In this document: positions 742 through 63,678 of the stretch, one piece after another
Layout: each line of letters opens with the position of its first letter
Numbering within the stretch: the first letter of the stretch is position 1
Source of the DNA: Isurus oxyrinchus
Taxonomy: Eukaryota
DNA: 64,000 nt
NCBI GenBank assembly: GCA_026770705.1
Contig: JANJGN010000052.1
Location: forward strand, 1,116,001-1,180,000
Direction: 5' to 3'
Notes under the pieces: generated by a model
The model's input: only the letters and a program-made list of their open reading frames with translations
Databases searched by the model: none
Told to the model about the DNA's origin: nothing
Translations under genes and position numbers: made by a program

Positions 742-1110
742 CAGAAACGTGAAGCCGGGTTACAGGGTAATAGTTATGGCTCGGACCATTGTCAAATTCT
801 ATTCTGAAAAAATAAGGTCCCGCATCTTCCCGTCTGATGCTGTTTATAATCAGGGAACAGTCGCCATCTTTCAGGTCTCCAGACAGCCGGGTCCGATGGC
901 GGAACCGTGGTAACTCGTGACTGTGATCCTTGGAGTGAAAGGCAATGGGAGCCCGCAATTTGTATTTCTTAATATTTAACCAGATTCCGACTTGTCGTTT
1001 GTTTTCAAAATATGCTGGATAACTGTAATGACATGGAATCTGTACACACGAACCTTCCTGCGCTGTCACCTCTCGTGGAGTGTCACCTTTCCACTCTTGT
1101 AACAGTCCAA
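742..1110 (-). CDS. Siglec-like gene A, V-set (sialic-acid-binding) Ig exon; gene continues beyond the left edge of the window
   Basis: ctccccag/TTGG acceptor and TCTG/gtaagt donor; 369 nt, phase 1-1. Siglec hallmarks: GSCVQIPC, DCSL, GPYFFRIEF with the essential Arg. Confidence 0.9.
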
Positions 1111-2029
1111 CTGGGGAGAGAAATATCAATATTTAACCCTGGATCCTCATTGTTTAAGGAATCTCTGGATCTTCATTGTTTAATGAATCTCTTTGGATCC
1201 TCATTGCCTAAGGGATTATTTCTGATCCAAACCCCATATTGTTGTATTGTTGATTCCAATGCAGCATTGTAGACTGACTTGTCCCCAAGCTCAGCACTGA
1301 CCCTACTCCAGCAGACACTGTGAAACACACTAACAAAGCGCCTCTAGCCTGAGCTCTGCATGTGTCGAGAGAAAGACAAATATACAAACTGAATATTAAC
1401 ACCTTTACACACAGACAGCTTTACCTTCCTTCTCTCTTTCAGTTATCTTGCTCCCTTATTGAAGTATCTAGCAAGGTGAGAATGGACAGGAAGTGTGACA
1501 CTGAACAGCCTGTCTATTCTAGGAGCTGCTGTGTTGTCTTCATGGGAAATTCTGACTAAAATCAGCAATAGACACTAATTTCAGGCCATTGCTGTCAGAG
1601 TCCTAGCCACAAGATAGACTTCATCCCCTGAATTTTGTGTCCAATTTTATACTCAAACTTTCACCTCCGCACACACCCACCCCGACCCCACAAGTCACTC
1701 GCTGACCTACACTGGCTCCCAGTCCAGCAACACCTCGATGTGATTATTTTCACACTTGATTTCCAATCCCTCCATCACTCCGCTCCACTCCCTGTCTCTG
1801 TAACCTACTTCAAACCTACAACCCTCTGTGATCTCTGCACTCCTCCAATTCTGCTGTCAGACAGGGAGTCAGTGTATATCAGTGAGCACAGGGGTGATGG
1901 GTGAATGGGACTTGGTGTGAGTTTGTACACTGGCTCACTGCTGAATCAGTTGCCAATCACAGCTCAATAAGAATGATCTTTTACGAAGACTATTAACCAT
2001 CAATTTGCCCGAGCTGACGATGATATTAC

Positions 2030-2069
2030 CTTGGAGAAGTGACAGGAGGCAGTAATATTTCCCGATCAT
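2030..2069 (-). CDS. Gene A leader (signal peptide) exon, MIGKYYCLLSLLQ
   Basis: ATG in a short exon ending CAAG/gtaata; phase 1 joins the V exon in frame (LLQ-VGLLQEW); conserved across the gene copies. Confidence 0.8.
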
Positions 2070-2519
2070 CGTCCACTCCCAGATATTTCAACAGCTTCTC
2101 ACTCTCAAACTCTGAAAGAGAAAGGAGTTAATGAGACCTCACCTCTTGTCCGACAGCTCTCGAGGGATCAGAACTGCTTTTAGACAATGTCTTCACAGAC
2201 TAATTTGATTCTCTGTGGGATGATAGGTGTTCTGCAGAGAGTTACAAGGCTTTAAGAAAGAAAAACAATGAAGGACTTGCATTTCTATATCGCCTTTCAC
2301 CTGCTCAGGACACCCCAAAGCTCATGTCCCTGCTCTTCCCTCATCCCTTGAGCTAGAAAGATGTTCTGTACAACAGACTTGAGCCTCACACCCAGATCTC
2401 AATAATCAGTAGAAATCTTTCAAAGGCATCAATCATTGGAATCTGTCTTTATAAAGTCACAACATCAACAAAGGACGGTGTTGGTCGTGGAAGTGAATTC
2501 CAATCGTTCCGTTACTTAC

Positions 2520-2660
2520 CCAGGACCTGTCCGACTGCTCGCCTGGGGAGGAACTGCCCACACGCTCTGCTTGGGCTGAATGACCTCTTCCTGTGCTGCC
2601 CCCTCTGTGTATTTAGTGAGAAAGGGTTGATGTGTCTCTGTGAGACAAAATGGGGAAGTA
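2520..2660 (-). promoter_or_regulatory. Gene A putative promoter and non-coding first exon
   Basis: Block repeated upstream of all six leader exons; perfect GG/gtaagt donor; GGGGAAGT and CAGGAAG ETS-type sites. Confidence 0.6.
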
Positions 2661-2857
2661 GTAAAGGAGTGAATAAACAGGCATTAGGAATGAGTGCGTA
2701 ATTTCACAATGCGTTACAACAGAATCAAACTGTTGGCAATTCATCATGACTCTGTGATCTTTCTGTTTGCTGTTTGTTAACTTCAAATTTCTACCATGGC
2801 TCTGAGGGTTTATATTTAAAAATGCTGTTGGAGGATAAATACTAAGCATGTTCTGCA

Positions 2858-3520
2858 CTGTCAGAGGGTCAGTATTGTTGGAGTGCTACCCTGTCAGAGG
2901 GTCAGTACTGAGGGAGTGCTGCACTGTTGGCGCGTCAGTATTGAGGTGTGCTGCACTGATGGAGGATAAGCAGCGAGGGAGTGCTGCTCTGTTTGAGGGA
3001 CAGCTGTGAGGGAGTTCTGCACTGTCAGAGTGTTGGCACTGAGGGAGTGCTGCACTGTCGGCCGGTCAGAACTGAGGTAGTGCTGCACTGTTGGACGGTC
3101 TAAACTGAGAGAGTGCTGCACCCGTTGGAGGGTCTGAACTGAGGGAGTGCTGCACTGCTGGAGGGTCTAAACTGAGGGAGTGCTGCAGTGTCGGAAGGTC
3201 TGAACTGAGGGAGTGCTGCACTGTTGGAAGGTATAAACTGAGGGATTGCTGCACTGTAGGAGGTTCTAAACTGACGGAGTGCTGCACTGTCGGAAGGTCT
3301 GAACTGAGGGAGTGCTGCACTGCTGGAGGGTCTGAACTGAGGGAGTGCTGCACTGTTGGAGGGTCTAAACTGAGGGAGTGCTGCACTGTTGGAGGGTCTG
3401 AACTGAGGGAGTGCTGCACTGCTGGAGGGTCTAAACTGAGGGAGTGCTGCACTGTTGGAGGGTCTAAACTGAGGGAGTGCTGCACTGTTGGAGGGTCTGA
3501 ACAGAGGGATTGCTGCACTG
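2858..3520. repeat. 33-bp tandem satellite (ACAGTGCAGCACTCCCTCAGTACTGACCCTCCG family)
   Basis: Directly visible 33-nt periodicity; the same family occurs in at least nine arrays in the window. Confidence 0.95.
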
Positions 3521-4224
3521 TCTAAAATACATTGCGCAAATTGCACAAAATTGCATCTGATGTCAGTGTCTGATGCACACATGAAGTTCATGCATTTATC
3601 AGGAATATTTCTCTCTCTTTCTGAGCAGCAAGGCAGCTTTGATATCACACCACCTACTGGCAATTGTGTGCAGCTGCAATGTGACGTGTTTACATTGAAA
3701 ATTTCCATTATAAAGATGGGCACAGGAATTCATCTGACTGGAAAAAGTGACAACATGAAGTAATGTCTTTGAGCCAAGAATCTGGCAGCAAAATAAGAAT
3801 TTTAATCCATAAATATCTACAGAACAGGCTGAGCATTTTAATCACTTGAGTAAATCAATGTAATTTTATTCATAACCCAAATGCTTCTTACAATCTATCG
3901 CAGCATGAAAAAGGTGCAGCATTCAGAAAGCACATTCCAATCAGAGAACAGAGTTTAGCAACGTCACATTTCTGTTCATTCCTATTCGACCATGTTGGCT
4001 GCACACAGCCAGACAATGCCGTGGTTATGATGTGTCCACACAGCAGGACTGGGGAGCACCAGGTATAAGGAAAAGTTTCAGCTTGCTGAGGAGAAGAAGG
4101 AGAATCTCTCGTTCCAGGTTTCTCTCCGTACATTAAGAAGCAGGCATGCCGATGTTTCATTGCACTCTGTCTGCTGATGGGAGACAGCTTGGAAATTGTT
4201 GTTTGTGCTGATGGAAAGAATAAG

Positions 4225-4825
4225 CTTTTCATAAATCGAGGGATTGAATACAAACACAGGGAGGTTATGCTGAACATTTATAAAGCTCTGGTTAGGTCAC
4301 AACTAGAGTATTGTGTCCAGTTCTGGTCTCCCCACTTTGGTAAGGCAGTGAGGGTCCTTGAGAGGGTGGGGAGGAGATTGAGCAGAATGGGTCCAGGGAT
4401 GAGGGATTTTAGCTACAAGGTTGGGTTGGAGAAGCTGGGGTTGTTCTCCTTGGAGCAAAGGAGATTGAGGGGGGGATCTGATCGAGGTGTACAAGATGAT
4501 GATGGGTTTAGATAATGTAGACAAAGACAAGCTGTTGCCATTAGCTGATGGGACAAGGACTGGGGGACACAGATTGAAGGTTTTGGGCAGAGGGGGATGT
4601 GAGGACGAACGTTTTTACACAGCGAGTGGTAATGAGCTGGAATTCGCTGCCTACGAGGATGGTGGAAGTGGAGACGATGAACGATTTCAAAAGGAAATTG
4701 GATGGACACTTGAGGGGAAATAAACTCACAGGGATACAGGGATAGAGCGGGGGAATGGGACTGACTGGATTGCTCTACAGAGAGACAGCATGGACTCAAT
4801 GGGCTGAATGGGCTCCCACTGTGCT
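4225..4825 (+). mobile_element. CR1-type LINE 3' fragment
   Basis: RT C-terminal peptide YKALVRSQLEYCVQFWSP...LGLFSLEQRRLRG followed by the gggctgaatgg 3' tail. Confidence 0.9.
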
Positions 4826-4947
4826 GGAATGCCTCTCTGATACGAAGGTGATTCTAACCAGGACACTGACCAGTTTCTTTACTATTTAACCCAAAATCAC
4901 ACGTTATTTGTCCGCACTGACTGACCAGATTGTTGCTGTACAAAGCT

Positions 4948-5087
4948 TCAAACAGTCTGTCGACTTCCTTTCACTGTTTGTCTCTCCCAGACACAGACTC
5001 CAGCGATAGTGATAACCACAGCCACAAGGAATATCACAGCTCGTATTCCCAGGATCAGGATCACGTGCAGAATCTCTCCTCCACTGT
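4948..5087 (-). CDS. Gene B terminal exon: activating-type TM with Arg plus short tail, (Y)SGGEILHVILILGIRAVIFLVAVVITIAGVCVWERQTVKGSRQTV*
   Basis: ttctctag/AC acceptor in phase 1, matching the preceding Ig exon; long hydrophobic run containing one Arg; stop after 12 cytoplasmic residues; same peptide at 28719-28858. This frame is not in the ORF track. Confidence 0.85.
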
Positions 5088-5469
5088 CTAGAGAACACAC
5101 AGAAAGAAATCATCACTGACTCTCCGCTTTCAATCTCTCACTCTGGCTGAACAATCAAGCTTCATATCACTGCAACATTTGCTGTAATATTGGCCCATCC
5201 ACTGGGATTCAATGTGGAATGAATGTTTTCATTGTAAACACTCTAAGAGTGGACAATCGGAACTTTCCCCTTAGCGTGGAACATTGGTGAGAATGGATCA
5301 TTGTGCTGTTGGACTCCCTGTCCAATGTTTCTCTCCATCGCTGTGTACAGGATTGTGCTGTAGAAAATTCTGGAAACGTTTAGTGCAGGGTGGAAATCCA
5401 TCTCGGACGCGTGTGCAAATCAGGCAGGATCGAGATGGACTCCCCCATGAACTTACACCCCCCGCTTAA

Positions 5470-5850
5470 TAAACAGTTCCAATCTTTACCCAGAGAGAGG
5501 GGAGAATGTGGAACTCGCTCCCACTGGGAGTGGTCGAGGTGAACAGTATCAATGTATTTAAGGGGCAGGAGGGTCGGTAACCAGAGGGACACAGATTGAT
5601 GAACCGGAGGGGGAGATGAGGAGAATTTGTTTTGACAGAGCGAGTTGTTGTGATCTGGAAGGTGCTGCCTGAAAGGGCAGTGGAAGCAGATTCAACAGGA
5701 ACTTTCAAATGGGAAATTGGATAAACACTTGAAGGAAGAAGATGGGGGCAAAGTGGAGTGGTGGTTAGTGGATCTGATTGGATAGAACATTGAAAGACCT
5801 GGCACAGGCACAATGGGCTGAATGGCCTCCTCCTGTGCTGTATCATTCTC
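5470..5850 (+). mobile_element. CR1-type LINE 3' tail fragments
   Basis: Degenerate RT C-terminus (FVLTERVVVIWKVLPERAVEA-like) and gggctgaatggcctcctcctgtgctg tail; mirrored at 27960-28335. Confidence 0.7.
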
Positions 5851-6752
5851 CGCTTCCATGATCTCTCCCCCAGTTAGTAACCACTCCAGATCCCTCTTGA
5901 AGGTGACAGAGAGACAGCAACCACCACACCCACTGACAGCACATTCCCGAGGATCCCTACTCTCTGGGAAAAGATGAACTCCCCAACATCCAGCCTATTC
6001 CTGCTTCCTGGAGAGTGTAAACCCTTCCCAGAGCGCGGATGAACCTTTCAATAAACTGTATCATCAAATCTCCCGTTTGATATATGTTAATTTCGATGAA
6101 CTTACACCATATGTAGCAAATTGTGAAGTGAAGTTGGCTGAAAAGCTGGGAGGTGCAAGCTTAAGCACCACAGTGCCACCACTGGTGGGAGGATGTAAAG
6201 ACAGTGTGACGTTTACATAGGATGCCCCCATTATAAACAGGGTCATTGGACATGATGGCAAAACTGAACACTGGAAAGGTGAGAAAAAGAAGTAAGCTCT
6301 TCACTAACAGGAAATCCCTTCCTAAACTTCCTTATCTCTCCCTTTCTCTCAGATACACAAAAAATTTGACACAGGGACTTATAAGGAGGAGTTAGGACAG
6401 GCAAGAGTTACGGATTAGGAAGCTTCTTAAAGGAGGAGAGAGATACACAGAGAGGTGGGGAGTATCAGTTGGAATCTTTGTGCATGTGAGTTTCTGGAAT
6501 AGACTTTGTAATTTGGATATTCTTCGATAAATATGAATGGGAACACATATCCCAGAATCCAGGAGAACTCTCCAGTGCAGTACTGAGTTTGTGTGTGAGT
6601 GTGTCTTTCTGTGTGCTCATGAGTGTGGGATTGTGTGTGTGCATGCACTTTGGGTCTGTACATTTGTGAGTGCTTGTGTGTGTGTGCGTGGGAGAGCATC
6701 TGAGTATATGTGTTCGGAGATGAGAGAAATTTTAAAGTCTGTGTACACTCAC

Positions 6753-7034
6753 ATTCCACAGTAATGGTTAGGAACCCCTCCACTGCTCCATGTTCATTCT
6801 CTGCCACACACTGATATTCTCCAGTATCCCTGGATGTAACGTGAGGAATCACCAACCACAGCTCATTGTTGGAACTTGTTCTGTTCATTGGGACATTAAG
6901 ATGTCGCCACATCAGGTTAGAAGCTGGGAAGCTCTCGACAGAGCAGATTATCACTGTAGAATTCCCCTCAATTATATTGATCGATGAAGCGTTAATCATA
7001 TCTGGAGAAGTAATTGAGAGATTCCGTGGTGCGT
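6753..7034 (-). CDS. Gene B third Ig (C2/I-type) exon
   Basis: ttttag/ACGC acceptor and GAAT/gtgagt donor; 282 nt; ICSVESFPASNLMW...DTGEYQCVAENEHG. Confidence 0.9.
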
Positions 7035-7149
7035 CTAAAAACAAATACAGATCAGTTAACTTACACTGACTGTGAAGCACTTTGAAAGACACTGAGAATG
7101 TGAAAGGTGTGATGTCAATGTAGGTTCTTTCACCACATAGTCCGTAATC

Positions 7150-7510
7150 CAGGCAGACACTTCAGTTCAGTATTGAGGGCGTGCTGCACTGTCAGAGGGT
7201 CAGTACTGAGGGAGTGCTGCACTGTCAGAGAGTCAGTACTGAGGGAGTGCTGCACTGCCAGAGGTTCAGTGCTGAGGGAGTGCTGCACTGTCAGAGGGTC
7301 AGTCCTGAGGGAGTGCAGCACTGTAGGAGGGACAGTACTGTGGGAGTGCTGCACTGTAGGAGGGTTACTGCTGAGGTAAAACTGCACAGTCAGAGCGTCA
7401 GTTCTGATTGACCAGTGCAATGTTGGAGGAGCACTACTGAGGGATCATTATACTATTAGAGAGACAGTAATGAGGGAGTGCTGCACTGTAGAAGGGTCAG
7501 TGCTGAGGAG
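7150..7510. repeat. 33-bp satellite array
   Basis: Tandem 33-nt units. Confidence 0.9.
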
Positions 7511-7545
7511 GCAAAAACGCTGTTATGTGTGTACTATAGGCCTCC

Positions 7546-8057
7546 TGTGATAATGTGGAGTGCCAGGTACCTTTAAGAGAATACAAGTGGATAAACCATG
7601 TGACAGTACTGACCAATCACTGGACAGTGTGGGCCACTGGTTAACTGTAAGTCTAGAGCTGGAGGTGGCTGTGGGAGCAGGCAAGGATTTAGTGCTCTGC
7701 CCTCTGTTACAATAAATAATCAGCTTGTTCTAATGTCGGTCTCTCTTGGTTATTGATAGCGAGCATCAGCTAAGAATAACTCAACAGGTCTGGCAGCATC
7801 GGGGGAGAAGAAAAGAGTTGATGTTTCGAGTCCTCATGACCCTTTGACAGAACTGAGGTCATGAGGACTCGAAACGTCAACACTTTTCTTCTCCGCCGAT
7901 GCTGCCAGACCTGCTGAGTTTTTCCAGGTAATTCTGTTTTTGTTTTGGATTTCCAGCATCCGCAGTTTTTTTGTTTTTATCAACTAACAAGTGTATGTGA
8001 AGGAGTGCAATTCGAATTTAATCAACCAGTGAACTCATAGACTCAAGATATAAAACC
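7546..8057 (+). mobile_element. Solo LTR of a Gypsy-type element, inserted in a CR1 endonuclease region and itself interrupted by a Penelope-like hairpin
   Basis: Homologous to both LTRs of the element at 37738-39725; splits CR1 sequence tactataggcctcc...aaacagtcagggagag. Confidence 0.7.
7765..7980. mobile_element. Penelope-like inverted-repeat (hairpin) remnant
   Basis: Inverted arms caggtctggcagcatc / gatgctgccagacctg; related copies at 18700-18915 and 59736-59870; degenerate hammerhead core in the arms; absent from the paralogous LTR in gene E. Confidence 0.65.
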
Positions 8058-8059
8058 AA

Positions 8060-9765
8060 CAAACAGTCAGGGAGAGATGGACAATCCAACATGTGATCAC
8101 ATTTCAGAGATGTGTAAGAATAACAAAGCAGTAATACTCAGGGATTTTAGCTACCCAAATATTAACTGGGACAGCTTTAGTGAGCAAGGTAGGGAGGGAG
8201 AAAAATTCTGAAGTTGCATCCAGGAGAAGATTTTTAGCCTGTGCATAGAAAGCTCAACAAGGGAGGGGACAGTTCTGGACCTAATATATGGAAAAGCGCC
8301 GGGGAAGTTGGAAAGCGTATCAGTAGGGGAGATAGTGACTGGAACTCAATTGGATTTAGGACAGTTATGGAGAAGGATAAGTTTGTGCTGGGAATAAAAA
8401 TTCTAAACTGGGGAAAGGCTAATTTTACTAAGATGAGATATGATTGGGCCCAAGTGGACTGGGAGAAGCTCTTTGCAGATAAAACTGTGTCAGAGCAGTG
8501 GGAGGCATTCAAGGAGGGAATAGCGAGAGTACAGAGCAGATATCTTCCTGCAAAGACAAAGAGGGAGACCAAGTCTGGAGAACCCTGGAAGACAAGGAAC
8601 ATAAAGGTTTGGATTGAGAAAAAAGAGAAGCTTATGGCAGATACTGAGGGCTCAATACAGCAGAGTCCCTAGAGGAGTATAAATAGTGCAGAGGGGAACT
8701 GAAAAAGGACATTAGGAAAGATAAGAGAGTGCATGAGAAAGCACTGGTGGGTAGAATAAAGCAAAACCCAGAGGGGTTTTTTAAATATGTAAAGAGCAGG
8801 AGAATAACTCGGGAAAGAGTGGGGCTGATTAGGGACCATCGAGGTAATGTGTGTGTGGACCTGGAAGACGTGGGTACAGTCCTCAATGAATACTTTGCAT
8901 CAGTCTTCGCAATGGAAAAGGATGATGCAGGTATAACATCAGGGTGGAGGACAGTGAAATATGAGAGGAAATTAACACAGAGAGAGGAGGTACTAGTGGG
9001 TTTAGCGGCCTGAAAAGTGGATAAATCCACAAGCCCAGATGAGATGAATCCAAAGCTGTTGAGGGAGGCAAGGGGAGAGATATCAGGGGCCCTGGCAGTA
9101 ATTTTCAAATCCTCTCTGGCCACAGGTGAGGTGCCAGAGGACTGCAGGATGGCTAATGTTGTCCCATTATTAAAAAAGGGAGGAAGGGATAGATCAGGAA
9201 ATTACAGGCCAGTCAGTCTAACCTCGGTGGTGGGGAAGTTACTAGTAAGAATTCTGAAGGACAGAATGAATCTGCACTGGGAGAGACAAGGATTAATCTG
9301 GGATATTCAGCATGGATTTGTTAAGGGAAGGTCATGTTTGACAAACCTGATCAAATCTTTTGAGGAGGTAACCAGGAGTGTTGATGAGAGTAATGCCTTT
9401 GATGTGGTCGACATGGGCTGAGGAAGGCATTTGATAAGGTGCCTCTTGGCAGAGAGGCCAAGAAAGTAAGAGCCCATGGGATCCAAGGCAAAGTGGCACG
9501 TTGGATCCAATATTGGCTGAGGCAGGAAGCAGAGGGTGATGGTGGAGGGATGTTTCTGTGACTGGATGTCTGTTTCCAGTGGGGTTCCACAGGGCTCAGT
9601 GCTGGGGCACTTGCTGTTTGTGGTGTATATAAATGAATTGGACTTATATAAAGGGGGAACGATCAAGACGCAAATGGAATTCAACCTGGAAATATGTGAG
9701 GTGATGCACTTGGGGAGGGAGTTGCTGACCAGCATGGACATGATGGGCTAAATGGCCTCCTTCTG
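8060..9765 (+). mobile_element. CR1-type LINE ORF2 remnant (endonuclease-RT), disrupted
   Basis: GNYRPVSLTSVVGKLL, QHGFVKGRSCLTNL, SGVPQGSVLG motifs with stops and frameshifts; near-identical inverted copy at 36035-37735. Confidence 0.92.
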
Positions 9766-9962
9766 TCTATGTGTCTATGAGTCTATGAGTCCATGATGCA
9801 CTGTCGGAGAGTCAGTATTAAGGATGTACTGCCTGTCAGGGGTCACTTTTTACCAGTGAAACACCAATGGTTTGTTGGTAAACAAAGTGCTGTATGTGGG
9901 AGCTTGCTGTGCACATTTGATACTATTCCAGCTAACGTAGAATGAAGGATGTCCATACTTAC

Positions 9963-10259
9963 ATTGCACCGTTAGTACGAGGGTCTGCTCCGATGAAACA
10001 GATGGATATCTCACTCTGCAGCTGAGAGTGTGTCCGTGGTGTTTGAGTGATGGGATCAGGGTCAGAACAGAAGTATAGGTCAGAGTGACACCATGCTGAG
10101 TTACAGTGTTTGAGACTGATCCACGTACGTCAGTGGGAGTGTCCCAGGTTAAGACAGGTGCTGCTGTTCCATTGCACGTTGTGTTGAAGGTGCAGCTTAC
10201 ATCCACACGCTTTCCTGCAATAATTTCAGCAGGGAATATCGTGGGTTTATCTGTGAAAT
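9963..10259 (-). CDS. Gene B second Ig (C2-set) exon
   Basis: gttag/ATTTCACAG acceptor and CAAT/gtaagt donor; 297 nt; DFTDKP...SCTFNTTC (extra Cys for the Siglec inter-domain disulfide)...LSCRVRY. Confidence 0.9.
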
Positions 10260-11574
10260 CTAACACACAGAGAATGGATCCTTTTAGAGAAATATAACGT
10301 GAAGCATCAGTTCAAATAGAAACCACAGTCCCACAAGAGAAAGCACTTTTACAAGGATGATATCAGAACTGAGAGGTTACAATGATCATTAAAGAATTGT
10401 CTATTTTTACACTTGTTGAATCTCTGTCACTCAGATTAATACACTCTCACTCAGTGACCCTTGATTTGACCAGACTGGGTGAGGGTGGAGGAACAGCTCA
10501 CAGCTCGGGGAGAACAGACTCAGCATTTGGAAAAGGATATAGAGACACTGGAGAGGGTGGTAAAAAGCTTCACAAGGATGATCTCAGCAATGTGAGGCTT
10601 TACCTATCAGGAGAGGATGTACAGGCTGGGTCTCTGTTCTCTTGAACAGAGAAGGTTGAGGGGTGACCTCATTTGACCTTTGAAGTAATGAAAGGTTTTG
10701 ATCGAGTAGACATGGAGAGAGTGTTTCCACTCCTCACAATGAACAAAACCAGAGGCTGACAATATAACATCCTCACTAATAAATCCAATGGGGAATTCAG
10801 GAGAAACTTCTTTACCCAGAGAGTGGGGAGAATGTGTGCTTCAAGAATCACTTCATTGACTGTGAATTGATTTAGGATCGTCCTGAGGTGGTGAAAGGCG
10901 CTATGGAAATGCGAGACTTGGTTTTGTATTTTGAAAGCAGGTTTCCAAGGATGAGATGGGAACTGAGAGGTCACAACAATCAGCAGCAACTTTCCTATTT
11001 TCAAACTTGGTGGGGAATGTGTCACTGAGCTGAATACACTTTCACTCCCAGACCCTTGAATTGCCAACACTGGGGTGTGGGTGATGGAGCAGCCCACAGC
11101 TCATGGAACCCTGGCTCATCATTCTCTCAAAGATCTGGGTCACTGATCCCATTGCTCTCTGTGGGAGCTTCCTGTGAACAAACTCACTGCCACGTTAGAC
11201 AGTGACTATACTTCAAGAATTTCTTCATTTTCTGTGAAATGATTTGAAGTTTGCTGAGGTGGTGTAAGGCGCTATAGGAATGCACATCCTTCTTTTGTCA
11301 AATTGTTAGACTTTTAAAAAGCATTAGGTAGACTGATGGGAGTGGATAACCTGATAACATTGATGGACACAGTCAATACATTTAATCATTGATATTAAAG
11401 TGAGTATTAGAGGTTGCTTTAGGACTGAACTGGAAGTTATCACCCGGTTATTGAGAATCAGACAGTGTGTTATAATAAGCTGTGTTTTGTGTTAATATGT
11501 AAACGTCACAGTTTGTGTTATTTCCCATTGAGTGTTGAATGTGAATTGTTGAGTAATTATAACACAGCACTTAC

Positions 11575-11943
11575 CAGAAACGTGAAGCTGGGTTACAGGG
11601 TAATAGTTATGGCTCGGACCATTGTCAAATTCTATTCTGAAAAAATAAGGTCCTTCATCGTCCCGTCTGATGTTGTTTATAATCAGGGAACAGTCGCCAT
11701 CTTTCAGGTCTCCAGACAGCCGGGTCCGATGGCGGAACCGTGGTAACTCGTGACTGTGATCCTTGGAGTGAAAGGCAATGGGAGCCCAGGGAATCTGTTC
11801 CTCATTATTAAACCAGACTCCACCTCGCGGTTGGTTTTCCAGACACGATGGATAACTGTAATGACATGGAATCTGTACACACGAACCTTCCTGCGCTGTC
11901 ACCTCTCGTGGAGTTTCACCTTTCCACTCTTGTGACAGTCCAA
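11575..11943 (-). CDS. Gene B V-set Ig exon
   Basis: ccacag/TTGG acceptor, gtaagt donor; 369 nt open; YFFRIE Arg present; additional Cys in YPSCLE. Confidence 0.88.
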
Positions 11944-12808: not shown

Positions 12809-12848
12809 CTTGGAGAAGTGACAGGAGGCAGTAATATTTCCCAATTAT
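12809..12848 (-). pseudogene. Gene B leader exon with lost start codon (ATG>ATA)
   Basis: Reads GGACA ATA ATT GGG AAA TAT TAC where paralogs read ATG ATC/ATT; in-frame TAA upstream; donor intact. Confidence 0.75.
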
Positions 12849-13297: not shown

Positions 13298-13440
13298 CCC
13301 AGGACCTGTCTGACTGCTCGCCTGGGGAGGAACTGCTCACACGCTCTGCTTGGGCTGAATGACCTCTTCCTGTGCTGCTCCCTCTGTGTATTTAATGAGA
13401 AAGGGTTGATGTGTCACTGTGAGACAAAATGAGGAAGTTG
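13298..13440 (-). promoter_or_regulatory. Gene B putative promoter and non-coding first exon
   Basis: Conserved module; AATGAGGAAGT PU.1-type site at about 13428-13438; gtaagt donor. Confidence 0.6.
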
Positions 13441-14005: not shown

Positions 14006-17000
14006 CTGGTGATGAGGTGAAAAACAAGGAAGAAAAATCAAGGAATGAGAGCAAGGGAACTGAAATCCGGCTGTGCCTCACGCAGTGATTATAAATATAA
14101 TTTCCATCCTAATAACCGAAGCAGTCCCCTCGAAGAATGCTGCAGTTTGGAAGAGTTGATCCTTTCGACCCAACGGTGGGCGATTGGTCTCATTATGGTG
14201 AACTCCTTGCGTTCTTTTTCCAAGTGAATGACATTGATGGGGAGGAGAAGAGGCGAGCGACCCTCTTATCCACGTGTGGGAGTAAGACTTAGGGATTGAT
14301 GCGAACTTTAATGTCACCCGGTGCCATGGGTTCAAAAAGTTTAGATGATATAGTGAACCTTGTGAAGATTCCTTCCCAGCCCCAGCCCTCGGTAACGATG
14401 CAACGGTCCAAATTTAACTCAAGAAATAGAGTCCCAGGGGAGGCAGCTGCATGTTATGTGGAAAGTCTGAAAGAGTTAATAGGACATTGTGAGTTTGGTA
14501 AATCTATAAATGATATGCTGAGAGATCAACTGGTGTGCAGTATAAATGAAGATTCGATTCAGAAGAGATTACTGTCTGAAACAGATTTGGATATTCAGAA
14601 GGCTCTGGGAATAGCGCTGGCTATGGAAAGAGCAGTGAGGGACTCGAAAAACATATGGAGAGTGCAAAATGTCACCGTCCTCATGTTGGGTGAGGAGCCT
14701 CAGCCAAGAAGTGCGGGAAAATGTACAGCTCTGATGAGAAGCGGGAAACCTCCACCACTAGCAGCAAATAAAAAGGAATGACTTAGCAGAGAAAACATGG
14801 AATAATGGGAACAGAGGTGAAGCAGACAACATCGTAGTGAATGGAACTTTAAAAAAATCAATTGTTTTTACTGTCATCGAAACAGAGAGCCCATGAGAGA
14901 TTGCAAGGATAGAATCAGGCAGAGTTTCAACCAAGAGAGAAAACCCTGTGAGATCCATAACATAGAAGAGCCTGAAGTAACAGATTCAGATAGTTATTCA
15001 TTGTATAATTTAAAGGTAGGAAGAACAGAGCCAATCTATGTAACAGTGAGGGTGAATGATAGAGCTCTCAGAATGGGGGTGGACACAGGAGCTAACACTA
15101 CGCTAATTGGTGAGCATACTTTCAAATACTGGAATCATGGGGAAAGTCAATTAAATTTGGAAGAAACAGATGACTAACTGAAAACTTACACGTGAGAAGA
15201 CATTCAAGCCAAAGACATAAGCAGGGTTATTATAAAGTATGGAAGTCAATCAGTAAAATGACCCTTGATGATGGGAGCTGGTGAGGGACCAAGCCTCCTT
15301 GGACGAAACTGGCTGAAAGATATTAAGCTGGATTGGTCTGAGATCTTCCAACTGAGAGCCAGTGGGCTACCTGAGCTACTACAAAAATACATCTCAGTTT
15401 TCCAAGATGAACTCGGGGAGATCCAGGGGCTGCAAGCAAAAATTCATGTGGATCCAGACTCTACCCCTCTGATTTATGAAGGCACGGCCAGTACCTTATG
15501 CAATGTGGGAAAAGGCAGATGCTGAATTGGGCAGGTTCTAGAAACTGGGAGTGATACAATCTGTGCAGTCCTCAGAATGGGCAGCACCAATAGTCCCTGT
15601 ACCTGAGCCTGGCCAAAGTGTTTGTGGAGATGACAAGAATTGACTGGAACGGCCTACACGGAGCTGATATGAGCCATGCTTATCAACAATTGGAGTTCGA
15701 GAAGGCCTCCCAGAAGTTTGTCACAATTAATACACACAAAGGGTTGTATCAATAAACCGGTTTGCCTTTCAGAGTCTCCTCTGCAGGATCACAGAGTCTT
15801 AATGGCACAGCAGGAGGCCATTCAGCCCATCGTGTCTGTCCCAGCTCTCCAAATGAGCATCATGACCTAGTGTCATTGCCCTGCCTTTCCCCATGCCCCT
15901 GCACCTTTTCTCTATCCAAATAATCATCTAATGCCCTCCTGAATGCCTCGATTGAACCTGCCTCCACAACACTTCCAGGCCGTGCATTCCAGGCCCAAAA
16001 CTTAGTTGTGTGAAAAAGTTTTTTCTTACGTCACATTTGCAACATCAGTCATGTTAAATGTCAGCGGGAAGGTGGAAAGGAGGCCAGGAAGACAGGAAAC
16101 TGGACATGACTGGCATAGTCATGACAGGAAGCTGACCGTAGGAGAGACGGTATATGTGAAGGATTTTATAGAAGGGCCAAAGTGGTCACCGGGTGAAATA
16201 AATGCAGCGATTGGAACTCTTTCTCACCATGTGAAAGTGGAAGACCGAGTCATATGGAGACATGTGGGTCATATAAGGAGGAGAGAAACAAAGTACCAAG
16301 AAACAATCCCACCAGTCTTCACGGCTGCGTCTATGTCTCCTGTTGAAAGACCTCAGCTGAGAACAGATGTGTCTGAAGGGTCCGTTGTACCTGCAAGAGT
16401 TGAGGAAACAGGTTTGCAGGTGTCCACCGAAGAAGCTGGTGTTGGGACAACATCAGAAAAGGAGACTCCTGACAAAGCATCTGAAGCTGTGGATCTGAGA
16501 CGTTCCAGACGCATAAGGAAACCCCCCAGAAAGACTGAATTTGTAAATTACTGATCTGTGTAAATCATTTGATACTTTGAGAAAATGGTAAAAGTAAGTG
16601 TAAAATGTGTTTCTGAGTAAAGGGGGAGGGTGGTGGTAATCTGATGTGTGATGTACCTTTAAGAAGAAGGTTACAATGGAAGATAACATGAGCTCAGTGT
16701 TGTGGTGTGTTCTCAGAATCAACCTCAGGCCTGGCTAAAAACAGAACTCTACCCATTACAGGGAAACCATCTTTTTTGTTCACAGAGTTAGTCACGTACA
16801 CATTGGGTTATTTAAATTCAAATCTTGTCAGTACATAATCACATAATAAGCATATGTTCCCAGTCCCAGGTACATATCTGCTCCTTACCCAAGCAAGAAC
16901 TGTTTATCTCGTTCTAGCCTGGTGCCGTTTGCCTTTACCTTATCTGTTTACCCTCAGCATCTCTTTATGTCTCTTCTCGAGTTAATCCCTCGTGATCTTC

Positions 17001-17470: not shown

Positions 17471-17587
17471 CAGAAAGATGAGAAGGATCTGGAAATGAAA
17501 TCTAACCGCGGAGTCAATCCTGATACAGATGATGATCTTTACGCAAACTGTGAATTTGCTGAGGATTCTGTTTATGGGAATTTATAA
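17471..17587 (+). other. Orphan terminal cytoplasmic exon of an immune receptor, QKDEKDLEMKSNRGVNPDTDDDLYANCEFAEDSVYGNL*
   Basis: Pyrimidine tract and tattacag acceptor; 38 codons to TAA; two acidic-context tyrosine motifs, C-terminal SVYGNL fits the ITIM consensus; AATAAA at 18361. No upstream partner exon recognised. Confidence 0.55.
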
Positions 17588-18919: not shown

Positions 18920-20290
18920 ACAGGAGGACATTCAGCCTCTTGATCCTGTTACACAGGAACAGCAGGAGGCCATTCAGCCCCCTCGAGCCTGTTACACAGG
19001 AACAGGAGGAGGCACATTCAGCCCCTCGAGCCTGTTACACAGGAACAGGAGGAGGCCCATTCAGCCCCCTCGAGCCTGTTACACAGGAACAGGAAGAGGC
19101 CCATTCAGCCTCTTGATCCTGTTACACAGGAACAGGAGGAGGCCCATTCAGCCCCCTCGAGCTTGTTACACAGGAACAGGAGGAGGCCCATTCAGCCCCT
19201 CGAGCCTGTTACACAGGAACAGGAGGAGGCCCATTCAGCCCCCTCGAGCCTGTTACACAGGAACAGGAAGAGGCCCATTCAGCCTCTTGATCCTGTTACA
19301 CAGGAACAGGAGGAGGCCCATTCAGCCCCCTCGAGCTTGTTACACAGGAACAGGAGGAGGCCCATTCATTCCCTCAAGCCTGTTACACAGGAACAGGAGG
19401 AGGACCATTCAGCCACTCAAGCCTGTTACATGAGGACAGGAGAAAGCCCATCAGCCTCTTGAGCCTATTATACAGGAACAGGAAAAGGACATTTAGTCCC
19501 TCAACACCCTTCCACAGGAACAGGAGAGAGTCTCAGCTCCTCGAGCCTGTTACCCAGGAACAGGAAGAGGACATTCAGTCTCTCAACCCACTTACACAGG
19601 AATAGGAAACCCATTCAGTCCCTCGTGCCTGTTACACAGAAAAAGGAGGAGGCCCATTCTGTTCCCTCGAGCCTGTTACACAGGAACAGGAGGAGGCCCA
19701 TTCTGTCCCCTTGAGCCTGTTACACAGGTACAGGAGACCCATTCAGCCTCCACAAGCTTGTTACACAGGAACATTAGGGGCTCCATTTAGCCCCATCAAG
19801 CCTGTTACACAGGAACAGGAGGAGGCCCATTCAGCCACTCAAGCCTGTTAGATAGGAACAGGTGGAGGCCCATTCAGCCCCATGATGCTGTTACACAGAA
19901 ACAGGAGGAGGCCCATTCTGTCCCCTTGAACCTGTTACACAGGAACAGGAGGCGGCCCATTCAGACCATCTAACCTGTAACACAGGAAAACAAGGAGATC
20001 CATTCAGCCTCTTGAGCCTGTTACACAGGAACAGGAGGAGGCCTATTCGGACACTCGAGCCTGTTACACAAGGACAGGGGGAGGGCATTCAGCACCTGGA
20101 GCCTGTTACACAGGAATAGGAGGAGGCACATTCAGCCCTGCCAAAGACTGTTACACAGGAACAGGGGGAGGCTTAATCAGCCACACAATCATGTCACACT
20201 GGAACAGGAGGAGGCCCATTTAGACCCCTCGAGCCTGTTACACAGGAACAGGAGGAGGCCCATTCAAACCCTCGAGCTTGTTGCATATGA
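18920..20290. repeat. Minisatellite of about 43-44 bp (CCTGTTACACAGGAACAGGAGGAGGCCCATTCAGCCCCTCGAG), roughly 30 copies
   Basis: Visible tandem periodicity; the unit resembles the reverse complement of the CR1 3' tail. Confidence 0.95.
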
Positions 20291-20387
20291 ACAGTCGATG
20301 GCCCTTCAACCACATTATTGGCACGCAAAGGGTTAACAGTTTTCTAACAGTGCGAGGCAAAGAGTTGCTTTCTCACTTGGTACCAAG

Positions 20388-20528
20388 CACTTCCTCATTT
20401 TGACTCACAGTGACACATGCACCCTTTTTAATTAAACACAAATAGGGAGCAGCACAGGAAGAGGTCATTCAGCCCAAGCAGAGCGTATGGGCAGTTCCTC
20501 CCCAGGCGAGCAGTCGGACAGGTCCTGG
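20388..20528 (+). promoter_or_regulatory. Gene C putative promoter and non-coding first exon
   Basis: CACTTCCTCATT (PU.1-type) at 20388, adjacent TGACTCA (AP-1-type), GG/gtaagt donor. Confidence 0.6.
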
Positions 20529-22747: not shown

Positions 22748-23113
22748 TTGGACTGTCACAAGAGTGGAAAGGTGACACTCCATGAGAGGTGACAGCGCAG
22801 GAATATTCGTGTGTACAGATTCCATGTCATTACAGTTATCCATCGTGTCTGGAAAACCAACCACAAATTGGAATCTGGTTTAATGACAAAGTCCTGATAA
22901 GATTCTTTATAGCCTTTCACTCCAAGGATCACAGTCACGAGTTACCACTGTTCCGGCATCGGACCCGGCTGTCTGGAGACCTGAAAGATGGTGACTGTTC
23001 ACTGATTATAAACAACATCAGATGGGAAGATGCAGGACCTTATTTTTTCAGAATAAAATTTGACAATGGTCCAAGCCATAACTATTACCCTGTAACCCAG
23101 CTTCAAGTTTCTG
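22748..23113 (+). pseudogene. Gene C V-set exon with premature stop
   Basis: CGA>TGA at 22783-22785 in frame; otherwise a Siglec V domain (YFFRIK); 366 nt. Confidence 0.88.
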
Positions 23114-24486: not shown

Positions 24487-24783
24487 ATTTCACAGATAAA
24501 CCCACGATATTCCCTGCTGAAATTATTGCAGGAAAGCCTGTGGATGTAAGCTGCACCTTCGACACAACGTGCAATGGAACAGCAGCACCTGTCTTAACCT
24601 GGGACACTCCCACTGACGTACCTGGATCAGTCTCAAACACTGTAACTCAGCATGGTGTCTCTCTGACCTATACTTCTGTTCTGACCCTGATCCCATCACT
24701 CAAACACCACGGACACACTCTCAGCTGCAGAGTGAGATATCCATCTGTTTCATCGGAGCGGACCCTCGTACTAACTGTGCAAG
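24487..24783 (+). pseudogene. Gene C second Ig (C2-set) exon, open but within a disabled gene
   Basis: 297 nt, intact splice sites, near-identical to the B/E/F exons; no third-Ig exon follows. Confidence 0.8.
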
Positions 24784-24994: not shown

Positions 24995-25466
24995 GTACTC
25001 ACCCCCTGACAGTGCAGCACTCCCTCAGTACTGACCCTCTGAAAGTGCAGCACTCACTCAATACTGAACCTCTGACAGTACAACACTCCCTCAGTACTGA
25101 CCCTCCGACAGTGCAGCGCACTTTCAGTACTGAACCTCCAACAGTACAACACTCCCTCAGTACTGACCCTCCGACAGTGCGGCACTCCCTGAGGACTGTC
25201 CCACCGACAGTGCAGCACTCCATCAGTACTGACCCTCCAACAGCGCAACAATTCCTCAGTACTGTCCCTCTGACAGTGCAACACTCCCTCAAAACTGTCT
25301 CTCCGACAGATTAGCACTCCCTCGATACTGTCCCTCTGACAGTGTAGCACTCCCTCAGTACTGACCCTCCGACAGTGCTGCACTCCCTCAGTACTGTTCC
25401 TCTGACAGTGTAGCACTCCCTCAGTACTGACCCACTGACAGTGCAGCACTCCCTCAGTACTGACAC
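24995..25466. repeat. 33-bp satellite array
   Basis: Tandem 33-nt units. Confidence 0.95.
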
Positions 25467-26297: not shown

Positions 26298-26337
26298 ATG
26301 ATTGGAAAATCTTACTTCCTCCTGTCACTTCTCCAAG
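26298..26337 (+). CDS. Gene D leader exon MIGKSYFLLSLLQ (intact)
   Basis: ATG, 40 nt, CAAG/gtaata donor. Confidence 0.65.
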
Positions 26338-49594: not shown

Positions 49595-49790
49595 NNNNNN
49601 NNNNNNNNNNNNNNNNNNNNNNNNNNNNNNNNNNNNNNNNNNNNNNNNNNNNNNNNNNNNNNNNNNNNNNNNNNNNNNNNNNNNNNNNNNNNNNNNNNNN
49701 NNNNNNNNNNNNNNNNNNNNNNNNNNNNNNNNNNNNNNNNNNNNNNNNNNNNNNNNNNNNNNNNNNNNNNNNNNNNNNNNNNNNNNNNNN
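49595..49790. other. Assembly gap (N run)
   Basis: 196 N. Confidence 1.
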
Positions 49791-54779: not shown

Positions 54780-54919
54780 ACTTCCTCATTTTGACTCACA
54801 GTGACACATCAGCTCTTTCTAATTAAATACACAGATAGATCAGCACAGGAAGAGGTCATTCAGCCCAAACAGAACGTGTGGGCAGTTCCTCCCCAGGCGA
54901 GCAGTCGGACAGGTCCTGG
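54780..54919 (+). promoter_or_regulatory. Gene F putative promoter and non-coding first exon
   Basis: ACTTCCTCATT and TGACTCA; GG/gtaagt donor. Confidence 0.6.
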
Positions 54920-55369: not shown

Positions 55370-55409
55370 ATGATCGGGAAATCTTACTTTCTCCTGTCAT
55401 TTCTCCAAG
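55370..55409 (+). CDS. Gene F leader exon MIGKSYFLLSFLQ
   Basis: ATG, 40 nt, gtaata donor. Confidence 0.82.
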
Positions 55410-58897: not shown

Positions 58898-59263
58898 TTG
58901 GACTGTCACAAGAGTGGAAAGGTGACACTCCACGAGAGGTCACAGCGCAGGAAGGTTCCTGTGTACAGATTCCATGTCATTACAGTTATCCATCACATTT
59001 GGAAAACCAACCACGAGTTGGAGTCTGGTTTAATAATGAGGAATGGAGAACATCGTCTATAGCCTTTCACTCCAAGGATCACAGTCACGAGTTACCACGG
59101 TTCCACCATCGGACCCGGCTGTCTGGAGACCTGAAAGATGGTGACTGTTCTCTGATTATAAATAACATCAGACGGGAAGATGCGGGACCTTATTTTTTCA
59201 GAATAGAATTTGACAGCAGGAATAGTTACAGCTACTATCCTGTAACCCAGCTTCACGTTTCTG
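58898..59263 (+). CDS. Gene F V-set Ig exon (Siglec)
   Basis: 366 nt, intact; YFFRIE Arg. Confidence 0.92.
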
Positions 59264-60122: not shown

Positions 60123-60419
60123 ATTTCACAGATAAACCCACGATATTCCCTGCTGAAATTATTGCAGGAAAGCGTGTGGATGTAAGCTGCACCTTCAACA
60201 CAACGTGCAATGGAACAGCAGCACCTGTCTTAACCTGGGACACTCCCACTGACGTACGTGGATCAGTCTCAAACACTGTAACTCAGCATGGTGTCACTCT
60301 GACCTATACTTCTGTTCTGACCCTGATCCCATCACTCAAACACCACGGACACACACTCAGCTGCAGAGTGAGATATCCATCTGTTTCATCGGAGCGGACC
60401 CTCATACTAACTGTGCAAG
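60123..60419 (+). CDS. Gene F second Ig (C2-set) exon
   Basis: 297 nt, intact splice sites. Confidence 0.92.
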
Positions 60420-60731: not shown

Positions 60732-60761
60732 GTGAGTTAATGCAAACTTCAACATCACTCC

Positions 60762-60811
<50 letters not shown>

Positions 60812-61411: not shown

Positions 61412-61693
61412 ATGCACCACGGAATCTCTCAATTACTTCTCTTGGTGTGATTAACGCTTTATCGATTGATGTAATTGAGGGGAATTCTGCAGTGATAATC
61501 TGCTCTGTCGAGAGCTTCCCAGCTTCTAACCTGACGTGGCGACATCTTAATGTCCCAATGAACAGAACAAATTCCAACAATGAGCTGTGGTTGGTGATTC
61601 CTCACGTTACATCCAGGGACACTGGAGACTATCAGTGTGTGGCAGAGAATGAACATGGAGCAGTGGAGGGATTCATAACCATCACTGTGGAAC
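61412..61693 (+). CDS. Gene F third-type Ig exon, full copy 1
   Basis: 282 nt, intact. Confidence 0.9.
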
Positions 61694-61719
61694 GTGAGTT
61701 ACTGCAAACTTCAACATCA

Positions 61720-61768
<49 letters not shown>

Positions 61769-62368
61769 ACACACATACTCATAAACATACACACACATTC
61801 ACTCATGCACAGAAATATTCACAAAGACACACTCACATATGCGCAAACACATACACACACGCACACACAGACGCATGCGTGCATACTCACACAAACACAC
61901 TCACATGTGCAGAAACACAAACACAAACACATACACACACATGAGGTCCCTCTCCTCTCTCAGTGCCGCACTGGAGTCTTGGTATCAGCTCTGATTCTGT
62001 GTTGAAGGAAGGTAAACTCCAGATCAGCAAGACCCTGAATTGGATGAGCAACTTCCTGAACAGAGAATTGTAGATTTACTCCTCAGTACTCCATCGATCA
62101 AATACAATTCATTCCCGTAAATCCCTTGGCAAAATCCTGAGGATGTGAAAGTTTCTTTCATTCTAGGTGGACAGCACCTCTACTGGTGGGAGAATGTAAC
62201 TGCAGTTTGACTGTTTACATAGGCAGTGTCCATTATAAATTTGACAGTGGAAGTTATAAGGAGGGAAGGTACCCGGAATTGCATACAGACATCAGTTACA
62301 GAGAGATGATGCATGGAGTCTTGCTGTAAATTGAGCTTGCTCACATTAAACACTTGATTTGTTTTTAG

Positions 62369-62650
62369 ATGCACCACAGGATCTCTCATTTACTTCGCTT
62401 GAAATGATTAATGCTTCATCGATCAATATAATTGAGGGGAATTCTGCAGTGATAATCTGCTCTGTCGAGAGCTTCCCAGCTTCTAACCTGACGTGGCGAC
62501 ATCTTAATGTCCCAATGAATAGAACAAGTTCCAACAATGAGCTGTGGTTGGTGATTCCTCACGTTACATCCAGGGACACTGGAGACTATCTGTGTGTGGC
62601 AGAGAATGAACATGGAGCAGTGGAGGGATTCATAACCATCACTGTGGAAT
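62369..62650 (+). CDS. Gene F third-type Ig exon, full copy 2
   Basis: 282 nt, intact. Confidence 0.9.
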
Positions 62651-63396
62651 GTGAGTGCACACAGACTTCAACATCACACACACAAACACAGACACACATG
62701 CAAAAACACTCATGTGTAGACACAAACATGCACGCTTACACACAAACATACGTTCAAACACATACACAGAAACACACACAAACTCAACTCACACGTACAA
62801 TCATTCATGCGCACACGTAGACACACGTATACACACACACTCACTCAAGCACAGATGTACACACAAGACCCACATACACACGCATGCCCACACATGCGCA
62901 GACAGACACGCGCATACACACAAATACAAACTCACTTGTGCAGAAATACACACACACACACAAGTGTGAGCTCCCTTTCCTCTCTCAGTGCTGCACTGGA
63001 GTCTTTGTATCAGCTCTGATTCTGTGTTGAAGGAAGGTAAACTCCAGATCAGCAAGACCCTGAATTGGATGAGCAACTTCCTGAACAGAGAATTGTAGAT
63101 TTACCCCTCAGTGCTCCATCGATCAAATACAATTCACGGGCTTTCAATCCCTTGGGGGCATCTTGAGAGTGTTAAAGGATGTTTGTTTCATTCTAGGTGG
63201 ACAGCAACTCTGCTGGTGGGAGAATGCAACTGCAGTGTGACAGTTTACATAGGAAGTGCCCATTATAAATGTGACAGTATTTTTTCCTGAGGGAAGGTAC
63301 CTGGAAATGCATTCCAACATCAGATACAGAGAGATGATGCATGGAGTCTTGCTGTGCATGCTGCTTGCTCACATTAAAATCTTTATTTGTTTTTAG

Positions 63397-63678
63397 ATGC
63401 CCCACAGAATCTCTCAATTACTTCTCTTGATATGATTAATGCTTCATCGATCAATATAATTGAGGGGAATTCTGCAGTGATAATCTGCTCTGTCGAGAGC
63501 TTCCCAGCTTCTAACCTGACGTGGCGACATCTTAATGTCCCAATGAACAGAACAAGTTCCAACAATGAGCTGTGGTTGGTGATTCCTCACGTTACATCCA
63601 GGGACACTGGAGACTATCAGTGTGTGGCAGAGAATGAACATGGAGCAGTGGAGGGGTTCATAACCATCACTGTGGAAT
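63397..63678 (+). CDS. Gene F third-type Ig exon, full copy 3; gene continues beyond the right edge
   Basis: 282 nt, intact. Confidence 0.9.

Follow-up and report, generated by a model that had tools for sequence, protein, structure and literature searches.

The stretch analyzed here (hereafter the window) comprises 64,000 nucleotides of the shark Isurus oxyrinchus, positions 1,116,001 to 1,180,000 of contig JANJGN010000052.1 in assembly GCA_026770705.1, and it carries a group of related gene units that appear to encode Siglec-family receptors with two kinds of ending, one of inhibitory and one of activating type. A first interpretation made from the letters alone (the sequence-only reading) had described six copies of one gene unit between positions 742 and 63678. 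Our mapping confirmed this observation: both limits are exact exon borders, and the window contains six leader exons, five full V-set exons and a V-set stub of ~10 nt at ~27207–27217. Exons were mapped with shark proteins and with the best matches of a full HMMER scan, in which 1360 proteins passed E ≤ 1e-3, and every border was then read; searches, alignments and fold predictions were run exon by exon, and the frames of joined exons were checked by script. Two assembly gaps, at 40547–40811 and 49595–49790, were left as they stand in the assembly, with no N filled.

Four of the six leader exons are intact, namely those at 2030–2069 (–, unit M2), 26298–26337 (+, unit Px), 32921–32960 (+, unit P2) and 55370–55409 (+, unit P3). 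The leader of unit M1 (12809–12848, –) begins with ATA for ATG, and that of unit P1 (21612–21650, +) shows a 7-nt deletion and a GC in place of the GT donor. The full V-set exons were located at 742–1110 (–, M2), 11575–11943 (–, M1), 22748–23113 (+, P1, with an in-frame stop), 33854–34222 (+, P2) and 58898–59263 (+, P3). First C2 exons are represented by four full copies and one fragment, with 95–98% identity at the protein level. The type of ending could be assigned within the window for three of the six units only; two units, M2 and P3, extend beyond it.

P2 (32921–43454, +), an inhibitory gene, is the only unit that is certainly complete and intact in the window; M1 is open but has no ATG, and the others are broken or incomplete. 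In P2, the leader and V-set exons are followed by C2 exons at 35534–35830 and 40243–40524, a transmembrane exon at 40907–41003 and cytoplasmic exons at 41725–41806 and 43206–43454. All borders are AG/GT, the open frame spans 471 aa, or 377 aa when the second C2 exon is left out, and the product matches the white shark protein P0024 over its full length. The inhibitory transmembrane exon, which occurs as a single copy, encodes an uncharged segment (RDTSKWTVGLFTAGIMLSVLLAEIFIFICVR), and the 82-nt and 249-nt exons behind it encode a tail of ~111 aa with two tyrosine motifs, (F/L)LYAN(P/T) and TEYAQI. The distal motif fits an immunoreceptor tyrosine-based inhibitory motif (ITIM)-like pattern, and the proximal motif here and in the white shark has P or T at position +3.

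This pair of cytoplasmic exons is present three times on the forward strand. The second copy (44626–44707 and 46274–46522) and the third copy (47707–47788 and 49159–49407) are also intact, and the cassette lies within a unit of ~3 kb that is repeated three times over 41112–49594 with 88–93% identity. All three cassettes have AG/GT borders and open frames, with the proximal motifs FLYANP, FLYANP and LLYANT, respectively. No AATAAA or ATTAAA was found within 1.5 kb past the stop codon of the first cassette, and such signals stand at approximately +560 and +605 for the second and third. Open frames of this length can survive ~10% divergence by chance, and selection on the three cassettes is not thereby proven. 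A Pfam search returned no domain in the tail exons or in an open reading frame (ORF) at 41705–42130.

The gap at 40547–40811 is intronic: it starts 22 nt past the donor of the second C2 exon of P2, stops 95 nt short of the inhibitory transmembrane exon's acceptor, and is crossed by no reading frame. Its left flank is homologous to sequence that, in P3 and M1, leads into a (CA)n tract behind the second C2 exon, and the gap is plausibly due to such a tract. The other gap, at 49595–49790, begins ~190 nt past the stop codon of the third tail cassette. Neither gap falls inside an exon.

The second kind of ending is encoded by a single exon that occurs twice, at 4948–5087 (–) in M1 and at 28719–28858 (+) in Px. 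The two copies are identical at 137 of 137 nt, compared with 97% and 94% identity in their flanks. The exon encodes ...ILHVILILGIRAVIFLVAVVITIAGVCVW, then ERQTVKGSRQTV and a stop codon, giving a transmembrane segment with an intramembrane arginine and a tail of 12 aa that contains no tyrosine. Both endings accordingly have the composition that had been described for them. The activating motif VILILGIRAVIF was found in proteins of Carcharodon carcharias, Scyliorhinus canicula, S. torazame and Chiloscyllium punctatum, which represent three shark orders; motif and short tail follow the first C2 domain in P0001 and P0002 and the second type of C2 domain in P0019 and P0032.

All exons of M1 lie on the reverse strand. 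Its leader starts with ATA, and no in-frame ATG was found upstream, where a TAA stands in frame. The V-set exon carries the YFFR arginine discussed below; the first C2-set exon (9963–10259; C2-set_2) contains an extra cysteine (SCTFNTTC) and ends in the donor CAAT/GT; and the second, I-set-like C2 exon (6753–7034; Ig_3/I-set) has AG/GT borders in phase 1-1. M1 retains AG/GT at all borders and an open frame of 375 aa, which shortens to 281 aa upon skipping of the second C2 exon, and its terminal exon, which encodes DSGGEILHVILILGIRAVIFLVAVVITIAGVCVWERQTVKGSRQTV followed by the stop codon, shares 91% identity with the C-terminus of P0001 of the white shark. In Px (26298–28858, +), the intact leader is followed by a V-set exon that is cut after ~10 nt at ~27217; one deletion, reaching from the V exon to the intron behind the second C2 exon, removed nearly all of the V exon and both C2 exons. 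The leader and the activating transmembrane exon of Px are in compatible phase, and the spliced product would be 59 aa long with no ectodomain. The proposed pairing of receptors within the window is therefore only partly sustained: both endings are present, but one activating exon belongs to a gene with ATA for ATG and the other to a unit devoid of Ig exons.

We examined splicing in four sequencing runs that were guessed to be RNA, which were aligned to the M1 region 4301–10300 only. Contigs joining position 9964 to 5088, that is, the first C2 exon to the activating transmembrane exon, were obtained in runs X1, X2 and X6, and contigs joining 9964 to 7035 (first to second C2 exon) in X1 and X2. 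In X5, a contig of 674 nt runs from the second C2 exon into the activating exon and on into its 3΄ untranslated region. Exon depth was ~50–100 times intron depth in the RNA-like runs. Both activating isoforms exist as spliced RNA in at least three studies, provided that the runs are RNA as guessed.

The V domains encoded in the window are of Siglec type. Pfam assigned V-set and Ig_CD22 to the V exons, C2-set_2 to the first C2 exon and Ig_3/I-set to the second. When the M1 V exon was compared with sequences in the PDB, the best match was Siglec-5 (2.8e-15), followed by Siglec-8, -7, -10 and CD33; MAG (1.9e-13), sialoadhesin (1e-11), Siglec-15 (2e-7) and CD22 (1e-5) were also matched. The segment GPYFFRIE aligns with GSYFFRVE of Siglec-5 and GSYFFRLE of Siglec-8, the site of the essential arginine, and each of the five V exons has YFFRIE or YYFRIE. 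Across 36 aligned sequences ranging from sharks to primates, C22, C27, W44, C85 and D96 do not vary, Y100 and F102 hardly do, and R103 is kept in at least 90%. The Siglec cysteine pattern is likewise present, with SCVQIPC and DCSL in the V domain and an extra cysteine in domain 2; when the first C2 exon is aligned with domain 2 of MAG and CD33, the two cysteines of the SC.....C pair match.

The V exon was modeled with AlphaFold at a predicted local distance difference test (pLDDT) value of 92.5. In a Foldseek search with this model, ranks 1–44 were all Siglec lectin domains (TM-scores 0.80–0.89, MAG being the highest), and the first non-Siglec appeared at rank 45 with a TM-score of 0.71. Every feature of the Siglec family that can be read from sequence was found, and the F-strand arginine, the SCVQIPC and DCSL motifs, the extra cysteine in domain 2 and the modeled fold agree with the Siglec assignment made in the sequence-only reading.

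The source of the DNA was recognizable from the V exons. Their ORFs match shark proteins best, in accordance with the predicted origin from a cartilaginous fish: the best match, at 92% identity, is a protein of Carcharodon carcharias named 'myeloid cell surface antigen CD33-like', followed by 'Siglec-14 isoform X2' of Scyliorhinus canicula and then by other sharks, skates and rays. These matches point to a shark near to, yet distinct from, the white shark. It had been predicted that automated annotation would label such genes MAG-like or CD22-like and miss the leader and transmembrane exons. This was not the case, since the NCBI names of the orthologs are 'myeloid cell surface antigen CD33-like' and 'Siglec-14/13/12' and most of the models include both exons. 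Our literature search, made in a library with few subscription journals, found no paper on cartilaginous-fish Siglecs; in the whale shark genome paper, Siglecs are merely listed among Ig gene families.

We computed an IQ-TREE phylogeny of domains 1–2 from 58 database proteins, in which orthologs (P0001, P0295 and others) stand for the genes of the window. True MAG, Siglec-15 and sialoadhesin are outside this tree; a search for true MAG with the shark 'MAG-like' protein P0150 returned shark paralogs and mammalian CD22 instead. The elasmobranch family forms one clade (Shimodaira–Hasegawa-like approximate likelihood ratio test, SH-aLRT, 100) with a shark subclade inside it (99), in support of a lineage-specific expansion, and its nearest neighbors are the shark 'MAG-like' genes. 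Mammalian CD33-related Siglecs and frog sequences form a separate clade (98), and mammalian CD22 falls on the shark side of the split. A tree of V domains only, with 166 rows, gave the same three blocks. Within the elasmobranch clade, activating and inhibitory members are intermixed, and the type of ending changes at least three times in the domain 1–2 tree; for example, the activating P0001 and the inhibitory P0295 of the white shark are mutual closest relatives with 88% identity.

These trees bear on the earlier description of the family as CD33-related-like. Architecture and tail motifs place it with the CD33-related Siglecs, but descent from them is not what the domain 1–2 tree indicates, given that these domains group apart from those of mammalian CD33-related Siglecs. 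The phylogeny that had been proposed as a check therefore yields a Siglec clade of elasmobranchs, but not one joined to the CD33-related group, in a tree without MAG, Siglec-15 and sialoadhesin.

The tails carry more information on this question. Inhibitory tails with LLYA(N/S)I and TEYAxI were found in sharks and rays, and LLYA(N/S)I is the proximal motif in other sharks. The shark and ray tails follow the pattern LLYA(N/S)INF, ~20 aa and TEYA(Q/L/S)IRFQ, and mammalian tails the pattern (L/I)(H/Q)YA(S/T)LSF, ~20 aa and TEYSEIK; relatives in bowfin and the sevengill shark are intermediate. When profiles of shark and mammalian tails were aligned with hhalign, both motifs fell in register (P = 1.6e-4). 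These results suggest, but do not prove, that the two kinds of tail share ancestry.

Self-comparison of the window revealed an inverted duplication, in which positions 1–6587 mirror 34963–27217 at 89–92% identity. The V–C2 region of M1 mirrors that of P2 with 96.8% identity over 4 kb, compared with 84% in the region of the second C2 exon, and the inverted arms overall are 84–97% identical. At the protein level, M1 and P2 share 84% identity in the V domain, 97% in the first C2 domain and 90% in the second. Both endings occur on very similar ectodomains, but the V domains of M1 and P2 are not near-identical. The same fragment of a long interspersed nuclear element (LINE) reverse transcriptase lies in the C2–C2 intron of M1 (7980–9750) and of P2 (36055–37816), and the duplication is therefore later than the insertion.

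The V exon of M1 differs from those of P2 and M2 almost only in codons 31–58, which correspond to the C to C΄ region. In these codons the numbers of synonymous (dS) and nonsynonymous (dN) substitutions per site are 0.34–0.41 and 0.31–0.37, respectively, compared with a dS of 0.015–0.03 in the remainder of the exon. High values of both against a background of low dS indicate an old segment and patchy gene conversion. Positive selection on this segment was considered, but it was rejected in view of dN and dS values that are both high and nearly the same. Codons 31–58 (11770–11853, –, in M1) exist in three versions among the five V exons, SCLENQPRGGVWFNNEEQIPW, AYFENKRQVGIWLNNEKYKFW and SHLENQPRVGVWFNNEEWRTS, and each version has its own white shark ortholog.

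We consider it likely that the window holds part of a multigene cluster in which a shark encodes Siglec-family receptors whose endings are either inhibitory or of activating type. The evidence for this reading lies in the exon anatomy, the Siglec-type sequence and fold, the conservation of the endings, the spliced RNA-like contigs and the mosaic pattern of similarity. According to the mechanism that we propose, the cluster would have arisen through segmental duplications, both tandem and inverted, after which the copies exchanged sequence in patches. Each unit would provide a signal peptide, followed by a V-set domain of Siglec type and by one or several C2 domains, and the F-strand arginine of the shark receptors would bind the carboxylate of sialic acid. 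In receptors with the uncharged transmembrane segment and the tail of ~110 aa, LYANx and TEYAQI, once phosphorylated, would recruit SH2 phosphatases and dampen the cell. In the others, the transmembrane segment with a buried arginine, followed by the 12-aa tail, would dock an Asp-bearing adaptor of the DAP12/FcR-gamma kind that carries an immunoreceptor tyrosine-based activation motif, and would thereby activate the cell. We infer phosphatase recruitment and adaptor pairing from the motifs; the window itself contains no adaptor sequence.

Several points weigh against this reading. M1 is without a start codon. In the spliced contigs, a G stands at the junction where the M1 donor CAAT/GT would yield T, so that these transcripts stem from paralogs and the expression of M1 itself is unproven; the anticipated joining of Ig exons to a transmembrane exon was seen for the activating exon at the predicted borders, but not with the base of M1. 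Possible sources of the activating transcripts are the C2 exon of P1 together with the transmembrane exon of Px, or other parts of the genome, and the nature of the read runs as RNA was guessed. The proximal motif, YANP or YANT, has no hydrophobic residue at +3 and hence does not read as a canonical ITIM. The gap at 40547–40811 could conceal a further exon, because the orthologs P0028 and P0014 have an additional Ig domain ahead of this type of transmembrane segment. Finally, the roles in binding and signaling are predicted.

Some of these points lend themselves to another explanation, namely that the activating arm is dead at this locus, with M1, Px and P1 decaying, the locus inhibitory only and the activating transcripts derived from elsewhere in the genome. 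We give this explanation serious weight, although somewhat less than an even chance. It accounts for the ATA of M1, the loss of the Ig exons in Px, the stop codon and broken leader of P1, and a contig junction with G instead of the T of M1; moreover, the model of the white shark ortholog P0001 is likewise without a normal leader. However, M1 otherwise keeps its 375-aa open frame and all splice sites, and its ATA may reflect an allelic variant or a mistake in the assembly. The complete identity of the two activating transmembrane exons (137/137), between flanks of 94–97% identity, also argues against simple decay. In addition, a 310-nt contig matches the intron of M1 itself with one mismatch, and the M1 locus is therefore probably transcribed.

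A second alternative holds that these genes keep the Siglec fold but not the binding of sialic acid, so that they would be protein-binding receptors of the immunoglobulin superfamily (IgSF) descended from Siglecs. The most variable part of the V domain, codons 31–58, has dN about equal to dS, as could be expected in this case, and the binding of sialic acid is predicted from sequence and fold. Nevertheless, the essential arginine stands in its YFFR context in five of five V exons and in at least 90% of the 36 relatives, and the best structural matches are ligand-bound Siglec lectin domains; we accordingly regard this alternative as unlikely. That the repeated units are an assembly artifact, with haplotypes or collapsed or expanded repeats posing as an inverted duplication, is very improbable, because despite the two gaps and the many 33-bp minisatellite and (CA)n tracts, the copies differ by 3–16%, with distinct lesions, V types and neighbors, far beyond allelic divergence, and the orthologous white shark contig carries activating, inhibitory and third-tail genes side by side.

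The cluster of inhibitory and activating-type receptors has its closest known parallel in primates, the only group for which reviews describe paired activating and inhibitory Siglecs (PMC6288428). As in Siglec-5/Siglec-14 and Siglec-11/Siglec-16 (PMC4042635, PMC5701461, PMC6288428), neighboring genes encode similar lectin ectodomains, with ITIM-type tyrosine motifs on one gene and a basic transmembrane residue with a very short tail on the other. Gene conversion maintains or reshuffles the similarity in both cases, and the activating members of the primate pairs, too, are often null or polymorphic. In contrast, the activating transmembrane motif of the sharks, LGIRAVIF with arginine, is unrelated in sequence to the mammalian VKIL... 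with lysine among the proteins compared, which indicates that the activating form arose independently. Furthermore, the ectodomains of the primate pairs are >99% identical, compared with 84–97% here, and the shark family stands in its own elasmobranch clade.

Reviews regard Siglec-1, -2, -4 and -15 as ancient and the CD33-related, ITIM-bearing, fast-evolving Siglecs as mammalian (PMC9630641, PMC9008986). The V domains of the window are ~30% identical to those of the mammalian CD33-related Siglecs (CD33, Siglec-5, -7, -8, -9 and -10), with the same arginine and cysteine pattern and the same order of V domain, C2 domains and transmembrane segment. The tail is also alike, LxYAS(L/I)xF being followed after ~20 aa by TEY(S/A)x(I/V), with order and spacing kept. 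However, the mammalian genes are not the sister group in the domain 1–2 tree, and the proximal motif of the window is not a canonical ITIM. MAG (Siglec-4) gave the top structural score for the V domain (TM-score 0.88–0.89) and the best Siglec score for both C2 exons, and a trio of shark 'MAG-like' genes is the nearest outgroup in the tree, from which true MAG is absent. Unlike the units described here, MAG exists as one conserved gene with five domains, belongs to myelinating cells and has no paired endings.

Among annotated proteins, the nearest are P0001 (activating), P0024 and P0295 (inhibitory) and P0026 (third tail) of the white shark and P0002 of S. canicula, which are orthologs or close paralogs with V exons 89–95% identical. 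They share the three tail types of the window, all of which are found on one contig in the white shark. These proteins differ in that they belong to other species, that their names were transferred by similarity, and that the P0001 model has no signal peptide.

A broader scenario is conceivable, although we hold it only tentatively and with more doubt than conviction. The two-motif tail of CD33 type may date from the jawed-vertebrate ancestor; the elasmobranchs may then have independently invented a portable exon for the arginine-bearing transmembrane segment, which recombines with inhibitory ectodomains, and conversion would homogenize everything but the old patch in the ligand loop. The features relevant here are the homologous-looking tails, the clearly non-homologous activating exon, the conservation of the family in at least three shark orders and the swapping of ectodomains between gene types. 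If true, 'decoy' pairing of Siglecs under pathogen pressure would go back more than 400 million years as a recurrent solution, instead of being a mammalian specialty. Inhibitory sensing of sialic acid as 'self', together with its counter-measure, would be old and recurrent, and sharks would allow the decoy hypothesis of paired receptors to be put to the test. What is gained is limited, since automatic annotation has already named the genes and their functions here are predicted.

The remaining units are as follows. M2 (742–2069, –) consists of an intact leader (MIGKYYCLLSLLQ) and an intact V-set exon, with an ATG, AG/GT borders and an open frame, and its V exon is 91% identical to that of P2; the remainder lies off the window. 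P1 (21612–24783, +) is a pseudogene in which the defective leader and the interrupted V exon are followed by a duplicated C2 fragment (23652–23768) and a full C2 exon (24487–24783). P3 (55370–63678, +) has a first C2 exon at 60123–60419 and four tandem copies of the second C2 exon at ~60638 (internally deleted), 61412–61693, 62369–62650 and 63397–63678, its ending being off the window. A (CA)n tract stands behind each of the four copies, the first of which has lost its core, NIIEG being joined to FITITVE. Unequal exchange probably makes the stalk vary in length.

A relic cytoplasmic exon of a third type (STGRGHSAQAERVGSSSPGEQSDRSW), matching white shark P0026, was found at 2520–2597 (–), 13299–13379 (–), 20448–20528 (+), 25764–25844 (+), 32391–32471 (+) and 54842–54919 (+), ~450 nt upstream of each leader. 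Its presence before every leader indicates that the ancestral duplication unit began inside the tail region of the preceding gene. At the center of the inversion, an orphan last exon of the third tail type (…NPDTDDDLYANCEFAEDSVYGN), similar to P0026, lies at 17474–17581 (+), with no transmembrane exon upstream on its strand.

A 33-bp minisatellite forms arrays of up to 57 copies between the exons on both arms (2853–3522, 7167–7508, 24995–25464, 30271–32150, 39759–40098, 42842–43060, 45902–46153 and 48814–49012). These arrays flank many exons and may favor unequal exchange. A separate 43-bp satellite of 32 copies occupies 18922–20294, also at the center of the inversion, and the minisatellite and satellite arrays account for long artefactual ORFs in the ORF list. 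A retroelement with gag-, protease- and integrase-like ORFs is located between the arms at 14296–16554.

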